From Phaeosaccion multiseriatum (Eukaryota; Protista; Ochrophyta, other classes): a DNA stretch of 64,000 nucleotides. Below the pieces are notes generated by a model. The model was not told the DNA's origin. It saw only the letters and a program-made list of their open reading frames with translations, and made no database searches. Each line of letters opens with the position of its first letter. The stretch's first letter is position 1. Below, one piece after another: positions 38,791 to 47,892 of the stretch. The stretch spans positions 310,001-374,000 of the forward strand of contig OZ218957.1 in the NCBI GenBank assembly GCA_965112735.1. The letters run 5' to 3'. The position numbers were made by a program, and so were the translations under genes.

Positions 38791-39435
38791 ATTACCTCTC
38801 CCCCCCCCCCCAGGGAGGGACGACCTAGTGAGTGAAGCAATGAGTAAGTGGATGCGTGCGTATGTGCATGGGTACTGAAAATACAATTCAATTGAACGTT
38901 TTTGAGTGAGTAGGGCACGTGCGTGAGCGGGGGGTAGAGTTCATCGAGCGCCCCTGCTCCACACCCAGTCCACACCCGCTCTCCCAAAAAACAAAAACAA
39001 AAACGCGGCCCGGCCCGAAACACGGCAAACTTGACACGGTGGGCACGGCCAAATCATCGACCCCTGACGTGCTATTATGCTATCTGCTATCGCCGGCGCC
39101 AGCCGGCGTGCTATCTGCTATTGCCGGCGCCAGCCGGCGTGCTATGTGCTATCGCCGGCGCCAGCCGGCGTTTTGTGCTATTCGCCCCCCCGGGGTCGGG
39201 GGTGGGAGGGTGCGCGTGCGGGGGGCTAGGAGCGGAGGAAGCAACTCACACGTGTTTCATTGCCATTAATTCGCGTCAGTTCTTGTATAGTATGCCTAAG
39301 GGAGTATATCAAGGTCCACCCTCTGCCTGGCCTGGCTGACCTGCTGCCCGTGCACCCCTACCTCTCCGCCCTGTGATTGACTGGCTCTCCGCTAGCTCAG
39401 CCGGCGGACGGCCCGATCGACATTGTGCTCGCCAA

Positions 39436-42400
39436 TCAGTCACTTTTACCACTAGGGCAGGCAGCATTCACTCCGTCACAATACCAGTCCCCTTCAGGAA
39501 GCGTAGAGAGGGGAGGGGTCAGGCAGTACGTGTGAAACTCCTCATCGCAGCCGTCACATAGCAACATTTTGTCGTGGTCAACATCTTTCTGACAGACTAG
39601 ACATGCAGTGGCTTCGCTGGAGCTAGAGTCTGCTGCTTTTGCCGTGCCACGAGACAAAGCCCCATAACTCTCGGGCTTGTTTACCGTGCGCCCACGTGAG
39701 GACATCGCCCCCACCACCTTTCCGATGATGTTCTTGCGCAGTGTTCTCAGGTTCAGCGCCTCCTGCTCGCCATCACTGCTATCGTCCTCAGACATGTCCT
39801 CTCCCATGTGCACGCTTGGGTCGGGGGGGGCGTATCCCATCGCCTTGGCCACCTCTTGGCCCTCCGCCTCTCTGTTGACAATCTGCTTGCACTCCTCGTG
39901 CTGCTCCTCCGTGATGGCAAACCTCCGAAGCCTTCTCTGCGCGCACACCCCTCCTGAAGCTGCATGTGAGCCTTCGATGTACATTGCTTCGTGGTAGCGG
40001 GGCAATGCGCCATAAATGGCAGCACAAGACACAGAAGCCTCTTTCCCGCCGTCGACTTCGTAGACGACTGCTGCAGCCCCATCCCCGTCCTGGGACTCGT
40101 CGGTAGAGTCCTGTTCAGCGACGTGAAAGTATGAAACACCAGGCTTTGCCGGAACCACCTTCTGCTTGGAGCCTCGTCCCTTCTTCGAGACGATCACCTC
40201 CTTCCGAAGATCGACGCGAAGCTGTGCAAGAAAAAAGCTCTCCTCCGACCCCTTGTCTGCCCTGACTATCACAACGTCATTTGCCCTGTAGAGAATGCGA
40301 GTTCGGACGGATTCACCGGTCTTCCGTCCTTTCTGTCCGCGCTTCCTCGCTCCCGAGCTCTCATGCAAGCGCGACAGGTATCCACTCGGGTCGTTGCTTT
40401 GCGCAGAGTTGGGAGCAAACGCCCCCGAACGCGGGGCCGCTCCAACATTGTACTTCCTCTTGTTGGTTACACGCTGCTGCGGAACCTTCCTAAGACGAGC
40501 CGCCGCATTGCGAAGCGTCTGCGTGTCCTTCTTGCGCTGCTTCCGTTGCCCTTCGTCAAGCTTCTCCGCTACCCTTGGTCGCTTCAACACGGGTGAAGCC
40601 ACCAATCTGCTCTCGTTTTGCTCCAGCTGGTATCCCGCCCTGAGCTTTCGACCGCTGCTGTTGACGCTGCTTGTGCAGTAGGCAAAACCCATGCTGGGGT
40701 TGGCCTTCTTCGCAGCCTCAAGCATCACAAGGCCCCTTCTTCGGGCATACTCAAGAGCGTCTGGAACATCCTGGCGGCCTTCCCTTTGCTTCGTGAAGAA
40801 AGTCTCAACATTGAGGGTCAAAACGCTCCTCATCTGCATCTTCTCCACGATGCCGCGAGGCACTCCCTGCTGACGGAAATGAGCGAGGAAGCATCAAGCA
40901 AGGAGCGAACAGCGAAGCCGTGAGACGAAAGGGCAAGGCTGATTTCCAAACGCACGCGCCCACGGACACGGACATTTTTACTCACGCACTCACGCACACA
41001 CACGCACACAGCCATGGGGAGCACCCCCTTCTCACCTCTGCAAGCATCCGATGTAGCATCCGAGGTAGTGCCTGCAGGCTCGCCTTGATAGCACCTCGAA
41101 CTTCGCGTGATGGCATTCCTTCAGGGCCCTGGAGAGAGACCAGGGATTTGCCTGTGGCAGCTGATATCGCTTTCCCCATGTGACTGAGAGCCAAGTCGAC
41201 CACATGAAGCTTGGCAATGCTCTCCTCCATCGTGCGTGCGTTGTTTTGCATGTCTTTGCCATTCTCATCCAAGTCTTCGCCCTGGAGCTGATACGCCTCA
41301 CTCAACATCCGTTGTAGTGGGATGAGGTGCTGGGCGTAGACGTAGCAGTCCGAGATCATTCGAATGCACTGGTTTCCAGTGTCGGACAAGAAGAAAGCGT
41401 TGTACACGAAGCAGCCGAACGTAGGTCTGAACAAAGGTACTTTCGATGCCGTACCGCTGGCAGTGCTCTCTCCGGGTTCTGTGTTTCCCTGTCCGCCCAT
41501 CAGCACGGATGATCCCTTCCAGCTTAGCACCCCACTGTCACGACGAAGGAGAACCTTGACAAGCGCATGCAAACCTTCATCTAGCATGAGGATGACGATC
41601 ATATCTTCATCATCGTATGCACCGGGTGGGGCCAACGTGAGTCCACAAGGCTGAGTCCCCACGTGAGACTTCACGCACGTGAGGTGTGCGCGCCTTGGCT
41701 TCTCAACAGTACCATCTTCCTCGTCATCAGTCAGAGCCATGAGTGTATCTCCGTCATTGCCACTGCCACCCTCTGGTCCTCCGGCACGTTCCACATTGCC
41801 CTCCCAGACAAAAAGCGAGCTGTCGGCGATGCAGGCAACGCAGTCATGCGAGAGTGCTGTGAGGCCCGCAGGTCCCTTGGGTAGGTCACACAGCTTCTCG
41901 CTCACAGGTGCAAAAGGGTTGCCAGCGTCAAATGAGAGCCGGTGTAGTGCTCCCCCCCCGCCAGGTTCCTCTTGGGTGACAAAGAGGTCGAACGCGCGCT
42001 CAGAGGACACGGCAAGCGCAATGGCAACGGGGCAACGGATGCCCTCCTCTTCTCTCTCCTCGAGGACATTCTCCTCAGAAGTGCAACGCTCCTGGATCCG
42101 ACGGACCAAGGGCACTGCCTTCAAATTCAAATGCCGTTGCTGAGTCTGTCTCCCCCGACCACGCGCTGCTACATGCCCGTCCGGTTGCTGGTCGTCGTCA
42201 TCATCATCGTCGCCCTCCTCCGCCGCCGCGCGGGATCCCCTGTTTCCTGGAAGAGCGGCCAGCACATGCACCACCCAAATCTGATTCGCTCCACTGTCAC
42301 ACATGTACACGTAGTCGCCAACCACGACGAGAGACCCAAGACTCTGGAAGCAGTCGTCTCGCAGAACAACCTCTGTGGTACAAGGCACATGATGGGCCTT

Positions 42401-44718
42401 GAGCATGCGCAGATGCCTGCCTGAACGATCGGCGTTGAAGATCATGCCAGAGCCATGATGGTAGCCCATACCAGTCGGCTTCTGAGTCTGCGAGGCCATG
42501 TTCTGATGCCAGAAACGCCACGGCTCCGGGCACACGGTCACCCCCACGAGAGCACGGCGCTTCTCCCGCTCCTCCTCTGAGAGTAGAGCCAACTGCAGAG
42601 ACGCCGTCGTAACAGCGATTGCGCTCTCCACTGAGAAAGGATCCTTGTTTTCAATGGCGTCAAGGCCAACATTGGCTTGTACTGCTTCACTTCGAGCCGG
42701 GTCCAGATCGTGGAATCTGGCGCGAAGAGTTCGCAGTCCGACTAGCCAGCCCTGGCAGACGACCCACCAATTGAATGTCGTAGCACGAACACACTTTACA
42801 AGGTGAGCCCCGTCAGGCAGTGCCTCATACCACCCCAGGGGGTCGTCCTCTCCGAGGGTTCTTGCCGCCATTTTCCGAATGAAGGCAAGCTGTGCGCCAT
42901 TACAGTCTGTTGAGATGCACAATGGTCGGAGACTCTTGCACACGAGCCCTTTCCTCTTGCACCTCGAGCAGACTCTGCTGGAGAACTGAGTCGCGCAAAC
43001 GCACTCACTTTCACCGCAAGGACCCTCCCCTCCGGTGGGACAAGCTTGGTGGCAATCACACGCCTCGCCCATCTCCACCCACGAGGGGTTCTCCCCCGTC
43101 AGAATCCGCTGCCAGAAAAGCTCGAGACAAGGGATGCAAACACGCAGCGCCTTCATGATTTCGGTCACGCTCGCGGCAACACTTTTGTAGTCACCCCCTG
43201 CGGTGTGAAGCTGAAAACCGATGGAGCCCGTGTATGCCCCTTTCAGATCCATCATCATAACTTCCATCATCTCGGAACCCAGCTTAGGTGCGTCCTCGTC
43301 TCGCAGCTGGAACAGAACGAGTAGCGATAAGGGAGGGTTGACAGGAGGCGAAGCAAAGGCGGGGCTGCAGCGTGAGCGAGCGAGCGAGGAGGCGTGATTA
43401 AGATTGACGATGGATCAACAGTGATTCTGCCCCGAAAGATCAGTGGGAAGGAGGGGACGCCACGCACCTGAGCATCAGACTTTTCCAGTATTGCCTTCGC
43501 CTGCTCCAGTGTTGTATTTCCAAACTGATGTGCATTGCCCCAATTGGTTTGGCTGGTTGTATCAGTATGATGGCCCTTGGCAATGACGAAGCCATCCATT
43601 TTGACAGTCACGGGAACCACAATCTTCTCGTTGCCTTTGTCGCCAAGAGTGTAGGCTTGGTCGGCACAGAAGCGGGCGAAGACATTGACGACGTTGATAA
43701 TGTCTTCGACTTGCAGACCGTACCTCTTGATTAGGCCAGGCCTGCGCCTAATGAGTGCTCTCGGATGAAAGCCGCCTGTGTTCGCCCTGCGGAAGTAGTC
43801 CTTCATGGCCTGGTCCCTGGAGACGTTGGGGCCACGAACCTTCTTTCTGCGGGGTGCCCCATAGGAGAGCATGGAGCATGCTGAACCAAATACGTTCTGC
43901 TGGGTCTCATTAAACTGTCGCAGCGTCTCGTAGCCATTGAGCTGCTTGCTCGCGGCCACAGTCTGACGCCTGGACCAAAGGCCGCTGTTCATGACCCAAC
44001 GATGCACCGTTTGATACATGAAGTGACTCCGAGTAAAGTGCCCTCGATCAAGATGGAATTGGATCGCAAAGGGAACAATGTCGACATCGTTTACGTCCCG
44101 GGTAAGCTCTACACGCCCGCTGTCCGCGTCTTCCGTCACAGCCACCCGCCCATGGTCTTCTTCTGTCGCGGACGAGCCCGCGGCGCCCATCGCCTTTGTT
44201 TGTGGCCAAATGTGAAACGGCAGAATCTTTATTGGCTTATAGCTGGCTGGGCCCATGGCTGGGCCCCACTGGTTCAAAAGTCCTTCATGTCTGGCCGCGA
44301 TGGAGGGAGGAGTTGGGGGGGGGGGGGCGACTACTACAACAGCAGGAGAGGCACGCCAAGTCCAGTTGGCAGCAGGAGTCGGAGCCGGGAGAAGGCCCCT
44401 GAGAGGGCGAGGAGAGGGAGGAGTGCCAGCAGGAGTTGGAGCAGGGAGAAGCACAGTGAGAGGAGGAAGCGAGGGAGAAATGCCAGCAGGAGTCAGAGTA
44501 GGGGGAAGGACACCGAGAGGAGGAGGGCAGGGAGAAGTACCAGCAGGAGTCGGAGCCGACCCAGATCCGGAGGAGGAGGAGGGAGGAGGGAAGGAGAAAA
44601 GGGTCGAAGCAAAGGGAGACGGGGCCGCAGTCCCAGCGAAAGAGGATTCCCAGCAGGCGCGAGGAAAATGCGTCGGAACCAAAGTCCCAGCGACAGGGGA
44701 GTACGCCGAAGCAGCCAT
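39436..44718 (-). CDS. P-element/THAP9-like DDE transposase with Cys cluster, NHL beta-propeller insert, BAH-like domain and PHD finger (exons 44718-43468, 43306-41036, 40869-39436; up to ~1651 aa)
   Basis: Two phase-0 GT-AG introns join three long ORFs in frame. Motifs in P-transposase order: VTVKMDGF (D), LGSEMMEVMMMDLKGAYTGSIGF, LCISTDCNGAQ (D), LPDGAHLVKCVR (DxxH), NKDPFSVESA, TLNVETFFTKQR..DVPDALEY (E). The true start may be downstream of 44718. Confidence 0.82.
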
Positions 44719-44744
44719 TCACAACACGCTTCTCACGAGCTGGG

Positions 44745-47087
44745 GTGGGAGGAGGGGGGCGGCTTGAGGACACCTATCTCCAGAGTACGGCAACCTTGGC
44801 ATCGTCTTCTGAGGCACAAGACTTCGATTATGCCTTGCCCCTGAGTGCAGGGATGGGACAGGCAAAACCTACCCCTCTCATGTTCGCGCATGTGGGGACA
44901 TTTCCAAGAGGATGCCTCAACCCCGTCGAGGCTGATTTCAGTCTCGGCACATCGGTGTCCTGCAACACGACCGAGCTCTTCGAGACCTTGCCCTACACGT
45001 TCCAGCTGGCTAATGAAGACAAGCGATTCTCCAGCTTCAAGGCCTTCCGTGGACATTTGACCAGCGAATTGCTCTTTCAGACGGAACAAAAGAAGAACGA
45101 CATCACGATCAGAGCCTCCACGGCATTCAGACGTGGCAGAGGGTTGGATACAATCCGCGACGACGTCTCCCTGCGCCGCGTGGTACGTGTCGGGTACAAC
45201 TGCCTCTCGATGTTTGTGCATTGTCTGCTACGGCAGCAACCCTTTCTTAAACCCGCCCCCCCCCCGCCCCTCTCTGTCTCTTTCTCCAACACACACCCAA
45301 TACAGGTGCGCTCGTTCTACACTTTCCCTCCGGGCCGTATCGATCCCGACAAACGGTGGAGACTGGATCTGTACTGCGAGCTACGCCCGAAATCAGGGGC
45401 GAGACAGCAGGAGAACGTGCAAATTTGCCTGTCTTTCCCTACCCAATCTCTGGACAGCGCCACAGATTTTTCGACCCATACCCCACCCAAGAAGGCAGGT
45501 CATCGAGGTGGTGCTGCCCGTGTCAGTGAGACCACCAGTGATAGTGAGGGAGAGAGTGCCGGCGGGACGAAAGGCGGGAAGGCGGGGCAAGAGGGGGCAC
45601 TGACGAAGAAGGCGAAGAGCTGGCTCCACGCGCAAGGAACCAAGTTCTTTTACCTTTTGCGGGAAATGCCTGATGTGGAGATGCAAACTCTCAGCGGAAG
45701 CAAGGTCGGTGATGCAGCAAGCTTCGTGAAGATCCATACGCCAGCTTTGATTCAGCTTGAGGCCAAAGCGAACTTCTCCATCAGACACGCCAGAACATCA
45801 TTGGATATGCTGGTATCTGTTGTGTGCACCAGGCCTGCTTGTCAGAGCGCCGGGAAGGGCAAGTACAAGCCTCAGTGGACTCATTTGTCTGGCGTTAAGC
45901 GCCACAGAGACTCCCACTCATCGAGCGGTCAGAAAAGCATGCAAGCTGCACTCTCTCACTTCCTACTGAAGACGGCGTTGGGGAAGCAGGAGGAGGAGGA
46001 GCAGGAGGAGGAGGAGGAGGAGGAGGATGATGGTGGTGGTGATGATGATGAGGAGGAGGAGGAGGAGGAGGAGGAGGAGGAGCAGGAGGGGGGGGAGGAG
46101 GAGGAGCAGGAGGAGGAGGAGGAGGAGCAGGAGGGGGGCAGCAGCCCTTCTTCCCACCAGAAGAAAAGCAGGGCCATGCCTGCGGCACAATCAGTGGCCG
46201 AAGCTGAGCAGCTGACAGGGGACATGAAGGCGAGGCTGCTTGTCCTCGGCGCTGAGCAGGACATGCACAAGGAAAAGGGGGAGTACACCTCCTTCTTTTT
46301 GGACGCGATGATGACCACTGTATCCGTGAACGGAAACAGGGCACTACTCCCGTGCGCGTCTCTTGGTCACATTTTCAACCCAGCTGTGGAGAACTCCCCC
46401 ATGCCCAACGTGTTGGCGACGGCTCCGAAAGGGTTCCTGCCGAAAGGTTACAGGGAGTCTGGTCTTACAATGACGAAGTGTGAGCTCCTCGTCCTCCCTG
46501 CGAGTTTCAGCGGCCATTTCTCGACTGTCGCTGTCCTTCTACCTACCTCTGCAGCTAGTGACGACGGGGAGGGTGCTATGGCGTACATTCTGCACTTTGA
46601 TACGGTCCGAAATGGGCGCCTCGGTCACCACCCTTCGAAGCGAGTGCTCCAAGCGACGCAGGTGTATGTGGAGAAGGTCATGGAGGACGAAAGAGCCCCT
46701 GGGACGGCAGCCCTCCGATTCCGGCAGGTCTTTGTTGGTGTGCCACAGCAGAAGGCCGGCTCGAATTCTTGCGGTCCGGCAACAGCTCTATTCATGTCGA
46801 AATTGGCTGTGGCAGACACCAGCCCCGTGCGCAAAGTGCTCTATGGTGTTGAGCAAGACAACAGCTGGGAAAGGGACGACGGTGTAGCGATTTTGTCTAG
46901 TGCGGCGGGGGCAAAGAAGGAGACCGTGGACCGCTTCTTGGCCGCGTGTGGGCTGCCGTGTCTGACCTGCGAAGAGTATGAGGCAGAGAGAACTCGCCTC
47001 TTTCGGGCGTACCTGAGCTCCGGGATGCGCAACGGTTCCTTGCCCGACGTTTACAACTCGGCCTTGCATAAGTGCGTCCTGGGTTAG
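44745..47087 (+). CDS. Transposon-encoded Ulp1/SENP-like (C48) cysteine protease with upstream C2H2/BED-like zinc finger and acidic tract
   Basis: ELLVLPASFSGHFSTVAV (His), YILHFDT (Asp), VPQQKAGSNSCGPATALFM (Gln/Cys); CTRPAC...HLSGVKRHRDSH; probable in-frame 123-bp intron 45183-45305; 5' start uncertain. Confidence 0.8.
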   Translation: MGGGGRLEDTYLQSTATLASSSEAQDFDYALPLSAGMGQAKPTPLMFAHVGTFPRGCLNPVEADFSLGTSVSCNTTELFETLPYTFQLANEDKRFSSFKAFRGHLTSELLFQTEQKKNDITIRASTAFRRGRGLDTIRDDVSLRRVVRVGYNCLSMFVHCLLRQQPFLKPAPPPPLSVSFSNTHPIQVRSFYTFPPGRIDPDKRWRLDLYCELRPKSGARQQENVQICLSFPTQSLDSATDFSTHTPPKKAGHRGGAARVSETTSDSEGESAGGTKGGKAGQEGALTKKAKSWLHAQGTKFFYLLREMPDVEMQTLSGSKVGDAASFVKIHTPALIQLEAKANFSIRHARTSLDMLVSVVCTRPACQSAGKGKYKPQWTHLSGVKRHRDSHSSSGQKSMQAALSHFLLKTALGKQEEEEQEEEEEEEDDGGGDDDEEEEEEEEEEEQEGGEEEEQEEEEEEQEGGSSPSSHQKKSRAMPAAQSVAEAEQLTGDMKARLLVLGAEQDMHKEKGEYTSFFLDAMMTTVSVNGNRALLPCASLGHIFNPAVENSPMPNVLATAPKGFLPKGYRESGLTMTKCELLVLPASFSGHFSTVAVLLPTSAASDDGEGAMAYILHFDTVRNGRLGHHPSKRVLQATQVYVEKVMEDERAPGTAALRFRQVFVGVPQQKAGSNSCGPATALFMSKLAVADTSPVRKVLYGVEQDNSWERDDGVAILSSAAGAKKETVDRFLAACGLPCLTCEEYEAERTRLFRAYLSSGMRNGSLPDVYNSALHKCVLG

Positions 47088-47892
47088 TGAAGGAGAGATG
47101 GCTGCCTCGCGAGAGAGGGAGATGGGGGGAGAGGGGAACGCCAAGGTTCGCCCAGCCACCATTGTATTGGTAATATAAGACTGAAGGCTCGCATACTCTC
47201 TGCGCTCGACGTATGCTGATTAGGCAGGCAGCTAGGAGTGGAAAGGCTGTCGCAGGGCGTCTGCTATCGCCGGCGCGACGGGGCGTGCTATCTGCTATTC
47301 GCCGGCGCCAGGAGGCGTGCTATCTGCTATTCGCCGAGTGCAAATAGCATGCTATTGGGCGCCGGGGCGCCCAATAGCATGCTATCGCAGATAGCATAAT
47401 AGCACGTCAGGGGTCGAAAATCACACGCCCCTGATGGAAGCGTTTATCCTAACTCGCCCTTTCGAAAAAGCTTTGAATCGGGCGGTTTCATGATCGTTTC
47501 ATCTTTCGTACCCCCGCGACTATTTGAACAGGCGACCGTTTGGGTGTTTGGGACGGCGGTAGTTTGGGAATAGGCGGTAGGTAGGTAGGAGATCGGCTCG
47601 CGGACCCCTCTGCAGCCTCACTTTGCACCATTACTTTCCATAACTCTGGGGTGCGGTAGCGGTAGCGGTCCAGGGTGTGTGTGTTGAAGTGGGAGCGCAG
47701 CGAGGTTGAGTTGGGAGAGAAAAGATTAGGGGGGGCAGGTACAGTTAGGAGGAATCGGGGGGCGGAGGAGGAAGAATTGCCTGGAGGAGGCAACCGAGAT
47801 CCAACCGACCAACAGGCGAGACGCATTGAATTGCACTGTGGGCAGGGGATGGGACATGACGCCCCAGGTAGATCCTGAGGCCGGCATAGAAC

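Follow-up and report, generated by a model that had tools for sequence, protein, structure and literature searches.

A DNA transposon of Phaeosaccion multiseriatum with a probable, distant P-element-type transposase whose catalytic core holds an NHL-type beta-propeller

The catalytic residues of the P element transposase of Drosophila are D230, D303 and E531, and a GTP-binding domain is inserted in its core between strand beta5 and helix alpha4; the enzyme has been described as the only transposase of the DDE (Asp-Asp-Glu) type with such an insertion domain (PMC7776569). We analysed a stretch of 64,000 nucleotides (the window) from the ochrophyte Phaeosaccion multiseriatum, positions 310,001 to 374,000 of contig OZ218957.1 in assembly GCA_965112735.1, a eukaryotic genome of 67 Mb in 22 contigs with about 60% GC. 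With good confidence, a minus-strand gene in this window encodes the transposase of a cut-and-paste DNA transposon of 8.36 kb that was recently active, and this enzyme belongs, as a distant member, to the P-element/THAP9 (TNP-like) DDE transposases with an RNase H fold and carries a beta-propeller and a Cys cluster inside its core. In Hermes/hAT, Tn5 and RAG1, too, the RNase H fold has an additional domain at the corresponding topological site. A propeller or NHL domain within a transposase was described neither in the literature searched in full text nor in a family library, and the same literature search turned up no beta-propeller at this insertion site in other DDE transposases.

The gene was assembled from three long minus-strand open reading frames (ORFs) at 44718-43267, 43270-40982 and 40863-39436, which the initial annotation had proposed to be spliced together through introns at 43467-43307 and 41035-40870. 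This three-exon model is supported by homology: both introns have GT..AG ends and shift the frame if kept, and homologues run unbroken over the two junctions. The parts of the gene are as follows (window coordinates throughout).

43468-44718, minus strand: transposase exon 1, 417 codons as an ORF; helical region preceding the core, and strand beta1 with the first catalytic Asp (D1)
43307-43467, minus strand: intron 1, 161 nt, with donor CAG/GTGCGT and acceptor TTCCAG
41036-43306, minus strand: transposase exon 2, 757 codons; beta2-beta3, alpha1, Cys cluster, second catalytic Asp (D2), DxxHxxK motif, helical flank, propeller, helical flank
40870-41035, minus strand: intron 2, 166 nt, with donor GAG/GTGAGA and acceptor CGTCAG
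39436-40869, minus strand: transposase exon 3, 477 codons and stop; helix with the catalytic Glu (E), C-terminal region, PHD finger
39475-39603, minus strand: C-terminal PHD finger, Pfam PF00628, E 1e-11, 45.1 bits against a cut-off of 24

Colinear homologues support the joins. P0014 bridges the junction of exons 1 and 2 with a length difference of 1 residue, exon 2 ends and exon 3 begins on adjacent residues, 541 and 542, of P0003, and the alignment around the catalytic E crosses this second junction in 23 homologues. P0036 is an intron-free ORF of 1,475 residues that covers all parts. Intron 2 has an alternative in-frame acceptor (CAG) 3 nt downstream. In the predicted chain, a Pro-rich start and a helical region lead to beta1 with D1, beta2, beta3, alpha1, the Cys cluster, beta4 with D2 and beta5 with DxxHxxK. 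Between this motif and the E helix lie the propeller and its helical flanks, of 84 residues before it and about 125 after it; a long C-terminal region and the PHD finger complete the chain. The PHD finger is likewise C-terminal in the homologues P0002 and P0003.

We considered whether the three ORFs might not form one gene, the propeller ORF being instead a separate protein or a captured fragment of a host gene carried as a passenger. Four sequencing runs that hold the stretch, all from one study, look like the genome's own DNA and contain no joints, which leaves room for this explanation. Against it, the homologues are single continuous proteins over both junctions, one of them free of introns, the spacing from DxxH to E is constant across the family, and both introns have canonical ends. 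In addition, D2 and DxxH share an exon with the propeller, so that the propeller lies physically between catalytic residues. Separate genes are therefore extremely improbable.

The start of the gene is less well defined. Matches of homologues to exon 1 are confined to residues 204-409, and the N-terminal 200 residues or so are Pro-rich and lie over 57-bp tandem repeats. Because the matches begin only at about residue 204, the 5' end given for exon 1 is provisional, as is the position of the promoter that the transposase shares with the divergent second gene of the element (ORF2). An Arg/Ser-rich ORF of 280 residues (44002-44844, plus strand) runs antisense to the Pro-rich first 200 or so codons, over the same repeats (44370-44556).

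The catalytic residues were examined in alignments of homologues and with family profiles, of which A3 covers the N-terminal core without the propeller, A4 the C-terminal core, and A5 a subclade. The following features make up the core.

43594-43596, minus strand: catalytic D1 (VKMDGFV), exon-1 residue 375; Asp in 27 of 27 homologues; aligns with D230 of P transposase
42902-43060, minus strand: Cys-rich cluster, 11 Cys, exon-2 residues 83-135, between alpha1 and beta4
42905-42907, minus strand: catalytic D2 (ISTDCNG), exon-2 residue 134; Asp in 48 of 50 homologues and invariant in profiles A3 and A5; aligns with D303
42794-42814, minus strand: D(2)H motif PDGAHLVK (DxxHxxK), exon-2 residues 165-171; aligns with SDTPHLIK (D339, H342)
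40804-40806, minus strand: catalytic E (LNVETFF), exon-3 residue 22; invariant in 24 sequences; aligns with E531 (IVEHFF)

All the positions given initially for D1, D2, DxxH, E and the Cys cluster proved correct, the motifs are conserved in about 100 homologues, and the placement of the cluster between D1 and D2 was borne out. Within DxxHxxK, D and K are each conserved in 53 of 54 homologues and H in 51 of 54 (K codon at 42794-42796). D1 and E are 821 residues apart in the exon model. In the structural model of a homologue, a long strand carries D1, D2 ends a strand, DxxH comes directly after the next one and E is on a helix, with a predicted local distance difference test score (pLDDT) of at least 89 for these blocks; the predicted order of strands and helices fits an RNase H fold. 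Across the family the cluster keeps 8-9 Cys and 1 His at 90% conservation or more. It probably binds zinc; its profile matches to RING and Zn2Cys6 modules are weak (E 0.6-0.8).

Several lines of evidence point to P transposase, with which the initial annotation had compared the protein, as the nearest described relative. The family member P0132 from Mytilus trossulus scores 26.7 bits with the Pfam model PF21787 (TNP-like_RNaseH_N), above the cut-off of 24.6. Its BLASTP match to exon 2 of the window (E 8e-14) starts where the Cys cluster ends, takes in D2 and DxxH and reaches the first blades of the propeller, and it matches the family profile with an hhalign probability of 100% (E 2e-52). Sub-threshold matches to PF21787 occur in P0047, P0063, P0077 and P0120, and in P0047 and P0077 the same chain has NHL matches. 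When profile A3 was compared with the PDB, the top match was Drosophila P transposase (6p5a, E 0.34), the family D1, D2 and DxxH falling on D230, D303 and D339/H342; profile A4 found 6p5a independently (E 0.87), with the family E on E531. The two match lists hold 7 and 4 of 177,635 chains, for which about 1.6e-4 shared chains are expected by chance. In language-model features of exon-2 residues 1-255, the ten best named clusters were all TNP-like (score 0.92). Going by these comparisons of sequence, the link to P transposase appears real but distant.

The locus shares with P elements and THAP9 (PF21787, PF21788, PF21789; 6P5A) the order D, D, D(2)H, E on an RNase-H-fold DDE core, a large insertion between beta5 and the E helix, and a VE.FF...R...P motif around the E. 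Introns in the transposase gene, 31-bp ends and subterminal repeats are also known from the P element. Unlike P and THAP9, it has a conserved Cys cluster of about 80 residues between alpha1 and beta4 and a C-terminal PHD finger, and Pfam detects neither a THAP finger nor a GTP-binding-domain signature. Unlike P elements, it has a 6-bp rather than an 8-bp target-site duplication and a second, Ulp1-like gene.

A number of observations weigh against the assignment of this protein to the P-element/THAP9 group with an NHL propeller in its core. The exons were searched separately, never as a joined protein, and in such searches no Pfam transposase model matched them at E<=10, the PHD finger being the sole match, while no NHL match (PF01436) was obtained in the window's own exon 2 even at E<=10. 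In exon 3, Pfam at E<=10 likewise gave no BAH match for the part ahead of the PHD finger (within 39436-40310). A six-frame search of the genome with PF12017, PF21787 and PF21789 gave nothing usable. PF21788, the GTP-binding domain, matched no family member, and exon 1 had no Pfam match to a THAP zinc finger, although with its 5' end uncertain an upstream exon is possible. The two matches to 6p5a are individually non-significant (E 0.34 and 0.87), and profile A5 did not retrieve this structure from the PDB. The structure match lists (Foldseek against the PDB with both models, VIA wide, ESM Atlas and BFVD) contained propellers only and no catalytic core. The target-site duplication is 6 bp against 8 bp for P elements, both splices are placed by homology only, and the net acidic charge of the propeller, described below, does not favour general nucleic-acid binding. 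Two further null results are that PF21789 matched no family member and that phmmer with exons 1 and 2 found nothing among the PDB sequences.

These results would also suit a separate, unnamed DDE superfamily outside the P/THAP9 group proper, with nothing but the generic (C/D)xxH RNase H core in common with P, hAT, Kolobok and others. Such a superfamily would account for the 6-bp duplication and TCGA termini, the lack of a THAP domain or a GTP-binding-domain signal in Pfam, the failure of the window's protein and most family members with every Pfam TNP-like model, PDB profile matches of just E 0.3-0.9, and the failure of A5 to find P transposase. P/TNP-like is nevertheless the only transposase type retrieved by sequence, profile or language-model searches, one member exceeds Pfam's own cut-off, and the four catalytic motifs are in register with D230, D303, D339xxH342 and E531. 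We consider a separate superfamily unlikely and retain the P-element/THAP9 assignment. Dada, IS3EU, Sola and hAT6, for which 6-bp duplications are known, were set aside, as no search pointed to them and the insertion sites share no target gene.

The initial annotation had listed a series of NHL-like blades between DxxH and E. In an AlphaFold model of the window's own exon 2, made with the family alignment (pLDDT 87.8, predicted template modelling score (pTM) 0.88), these blades coincide with the 24-25 strands of a six-bladed propeller, residues 253-653, in which six four-stranded blades close as a ring. Two disordered acidic loops interrupt it at residues 348-425 (42032-42265) and 503-540 (41687-41800). 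The propeller and its flanks are placed as follows.

42551-42802, minus strand: helical segment before the propeller, exon-2 residues 169-252, from DSSP of the model
41348-42550, minus strand: six-bladed NHL-type beta-propeller, exon-2 residues 253-653
41036-41347, minus strand: three long helices after the propeller, exon-2 residues 654-757, from DSSP of the model

The fold is best matched by NHL and not by Kelch propellers. In a Foldseek search with the window's exon 2 model, Pizza6 designs ranked first and PknD was also listed (template modelling score by target 0.71-0.77). As for the Pfam NHL scan that had been suggested, it failed for the window's protein, as stated above, and succeeded in 10 of 106 family members (best E 9.1e-11). 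The family profile matched NHL chains of the PDB, namely Pizza (E 2.6e-25), NHLRC2 (E 5e-15) and TRIM71 (E 1.3e-10). The NHL assignment is thus sound at the level of the family, where it rests on the family profile and the fold.

The suggestion had also been made that the propeller acts as in TRIM-NHL proteins, binding a specific host or element RNA that regulates or guides transposition. Among its best structural matches are indeed NHL domains that bind RNA, those of TRIM71/Lin41, TRIM2/3 and Brat. However, PknD, NHLRC2, SOQ1 and lactonases, which bind no RNA, match equally well, within 1-2 Z units. The RNA-binding face of TRIM-NHL domains is basic, and the propeller here is unlike that: its structured part is net acidic, with an isoelectric point of 5.7 in the window's protein and 5.2 in the homologue P0006. 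A role in RNA binding is accordingly quite improbable. The propeller also differs from those of TRIM-NHL and other NHL proteins in its two long disordered acidic loops and in lying below Pfam detection, and whereas it is a terminal module in TRIM-NHL proteins, PknD, NHLRC2 and SOQ1, here it is nested in a catalytic domain.

The propeller had been said to occupy the position that holds the GTP-binding insertion in P transposase. It does lie between DxxH and E, but it is no simple replacement. About 210 helical residues flank it, at exon-2 residues 169-252 and from residues 654-757 onwards into exon 3, compared with the 189 residues between H342 and E531 of P transposase; since the flanks are about the size of the P transposase insertion, the propeller appears to be nested inside a helical insertion domain rather than to replace it. 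The whole insertion with its NHL propeller comes to about 610 residues here and 510-560 in relatives, against 189 in P transposase. A pTM of 0.88 for both multi-domain models suggests a fixed arrangement of domains, with the propeller packed in a set position.

The search for the same fusion in other taxa was successful. With exon 2 as the query, an exhaustive HMMER search of 1.84 billion cluster representatives yielded 109 relatives; a word-indexed homologue search found nothing with exon 2 and two more members with profile A3. In about 20 full-length members the spacing from DxxH to E is 510-560 residues, which indicates that the propeller is present across the family and that the large insertion is ancestral to the clade. 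A distant branch occurs in animals (Priapulus caudatus, Mytilus species, Porites, Oculina, Paramuricea and Exaiptasia), and the layout is ancestral to a clade spanning protists, bivalves, cnidarians and a priapulid. Ten relatives that were looked up had no name or were called hypothetical, and none of about 150 member proteins retrieved carried a functional name, most of them being without a Pfam family; the transposon family is thus effectively unannotated. Additional domains were seen in individual members: P0120 from Mytilus coruscus has an ALS2CR8 domain (E 6e-7), and P0065 has a SAP domain between core and propeller (E 6e-8), with a weak SAP match in P0077. A search for inverted repeats on two homologue contigs gave no clear element ends.

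The limits of the element in the window were obtained by comparing copies within the genome. The seven copies align end to end at 99.4% identity or more, and the similarity breaks off sharply at 39057 and 47417.

39057-47417, no strand assigned: whole autonomous DNA transposon, 8,361 bp, from BLAST of the neighbourhood against six other genomic places
39051-39056, plus strand: left target-site duplication, AAATCA, which recurs at 47418-47423
39057-39087, plus strand: left terminal inverted repeat, 31 bp, beginning TCGACCCCTGACG; perfect reverse complement of 47387-47417
39078-39171, no strand assigned: subterminal 31-bp tandem repeats, 3 copies, from Tandem Repeats Finder (TRF), 95% matches
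47260-47355, no strand assigned: subterminal 32-bp tandem repeats at the opposite end, about 3 copies, from TRF
47387-47417, minus strand: right terminal inverted repeat, 31 bp
47418-47423, plus strand: right target-site duplication, AAATCA

For the first 19 bp of the terminal inverted repeat, 0 chance matches are expected. The 6-bp duplication is present at 7 of 7 copies, and a seventh base agrees in 3 of 7 only, which is the level of chance. The subterminal tandem repeats are putative binding sites of the transposase. The seven target duplications average 31% GC in this genome of about 60% GC (binomial P 1.3e-4), which suggests a preference for AT-rich targets.

The seven full copies differ by 0-18 substitutions, so transposition was recent. 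Exon 2 is uninterrupted in 5 of the 7, and because the copies are near-identical and most have this exon intact, the element is probably still active, as judged from the genome sequence. In two young copies (C3:605450-607719 and C3:504956-507224) exon 2 was recovered as two overlapping matches, with one TGA inside. The break in these two copies looks like a frameshift, the remainder of each being at least 99.4% identical. Older, diverged relatives of the transposase (33-41% amino acid identity) were found at C10:2891751-2893880 and about 30 other places on many contigs, several of them with in-frame stops. Their scatter and divergence indicate that the family has long been resident in the genome, in more than one lineage. 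Contigs of the four public DNA runs all differ from the window in the same three bases and two 1-bp insertions (40424, 42235, 42517, 41023 and 44753); one of the insertions falls in intron 2, the other within the ORF2 reading frame, close to its start. These contigs probably represent another copy or a collapsed assembly of copies.

The second gene of the element is present within all copies.

44745-47087, plus strand: second element gene (ORF2), an ORF of 780 residues, divergent from the transposase

The C-terminal part of ORF2 resembles an Ulp1/C48 protease: language-model features of its last 280 residues score 0.95 (181 shared) to Peptidase_C48/Ulp1 clusters. Comparison of ORF2 with Pfam and with PDB sequences gave nothing. 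An (AGG)49 run at 45988-46134 encodes poly-Glu.

If the models are right, the propeller would be a rigid, integral part of the insertion domain and not a floppy tag. It would most likely add a binding platform to the transpososome, beside the catalytic core, for which the candidate ligands are a nucleosome, a protein partner, or flanking or target DNA. The separate propeller of RAG2 would be a parallel, as it does such a job for RAG1, and the PHD finger of the transposase would steer the enzyme to marked chromatin.

In the RAG1-RAG2 recombinase, a DDE core of RNase H type occurs together with a six-bladed propeller and a PHD finger, and the catalytic region has zinc-binding modules. RAG1-RAG2 and Transib/ProtoRAG thus have the same list of parts as the transposase described here, which has all of them in one chain; its propeller is of NHL type and that of RAG2 of Kelch type, and its core is P-like and not Transib-like. 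Neither the sequence nor the fold match lists contained a RAG or Transib chain. The likeness may serve as an analogy with a testable mechanism, and nothing suggests common descent. On this analogy, the clade would be a single-chain counterpart of RAG1-RAG2, in which the built-in propeller would be needed for DNA cleavage, clamping flanking or target DNA or a nucleosome near the active site, and would together with the PHD finger couple transposition to a histone mark. We put this forward tentatively and regard it as doubtful.

DDE transposases diverge most at the insertion site of the RNase H fold. Throughout the clade described here, this site contains a nested, folded propeller, the core has a zinc-type cluster as well, and the chain ends in a finger of the chromatin-reader type. 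The family may serve as a natural test of the propeller's contribution to a DDE recombinase, the unresolved part of the RAG1-RAG2 partnership. With its near-identical copies, the element could be tested directly. Should the RAG-like scheme be true, a DDE core, a propeller and a PHD finger would have been assembled at least twice in evolution, and the transposase would be a tractable model for why RAG1 needs RAG2.

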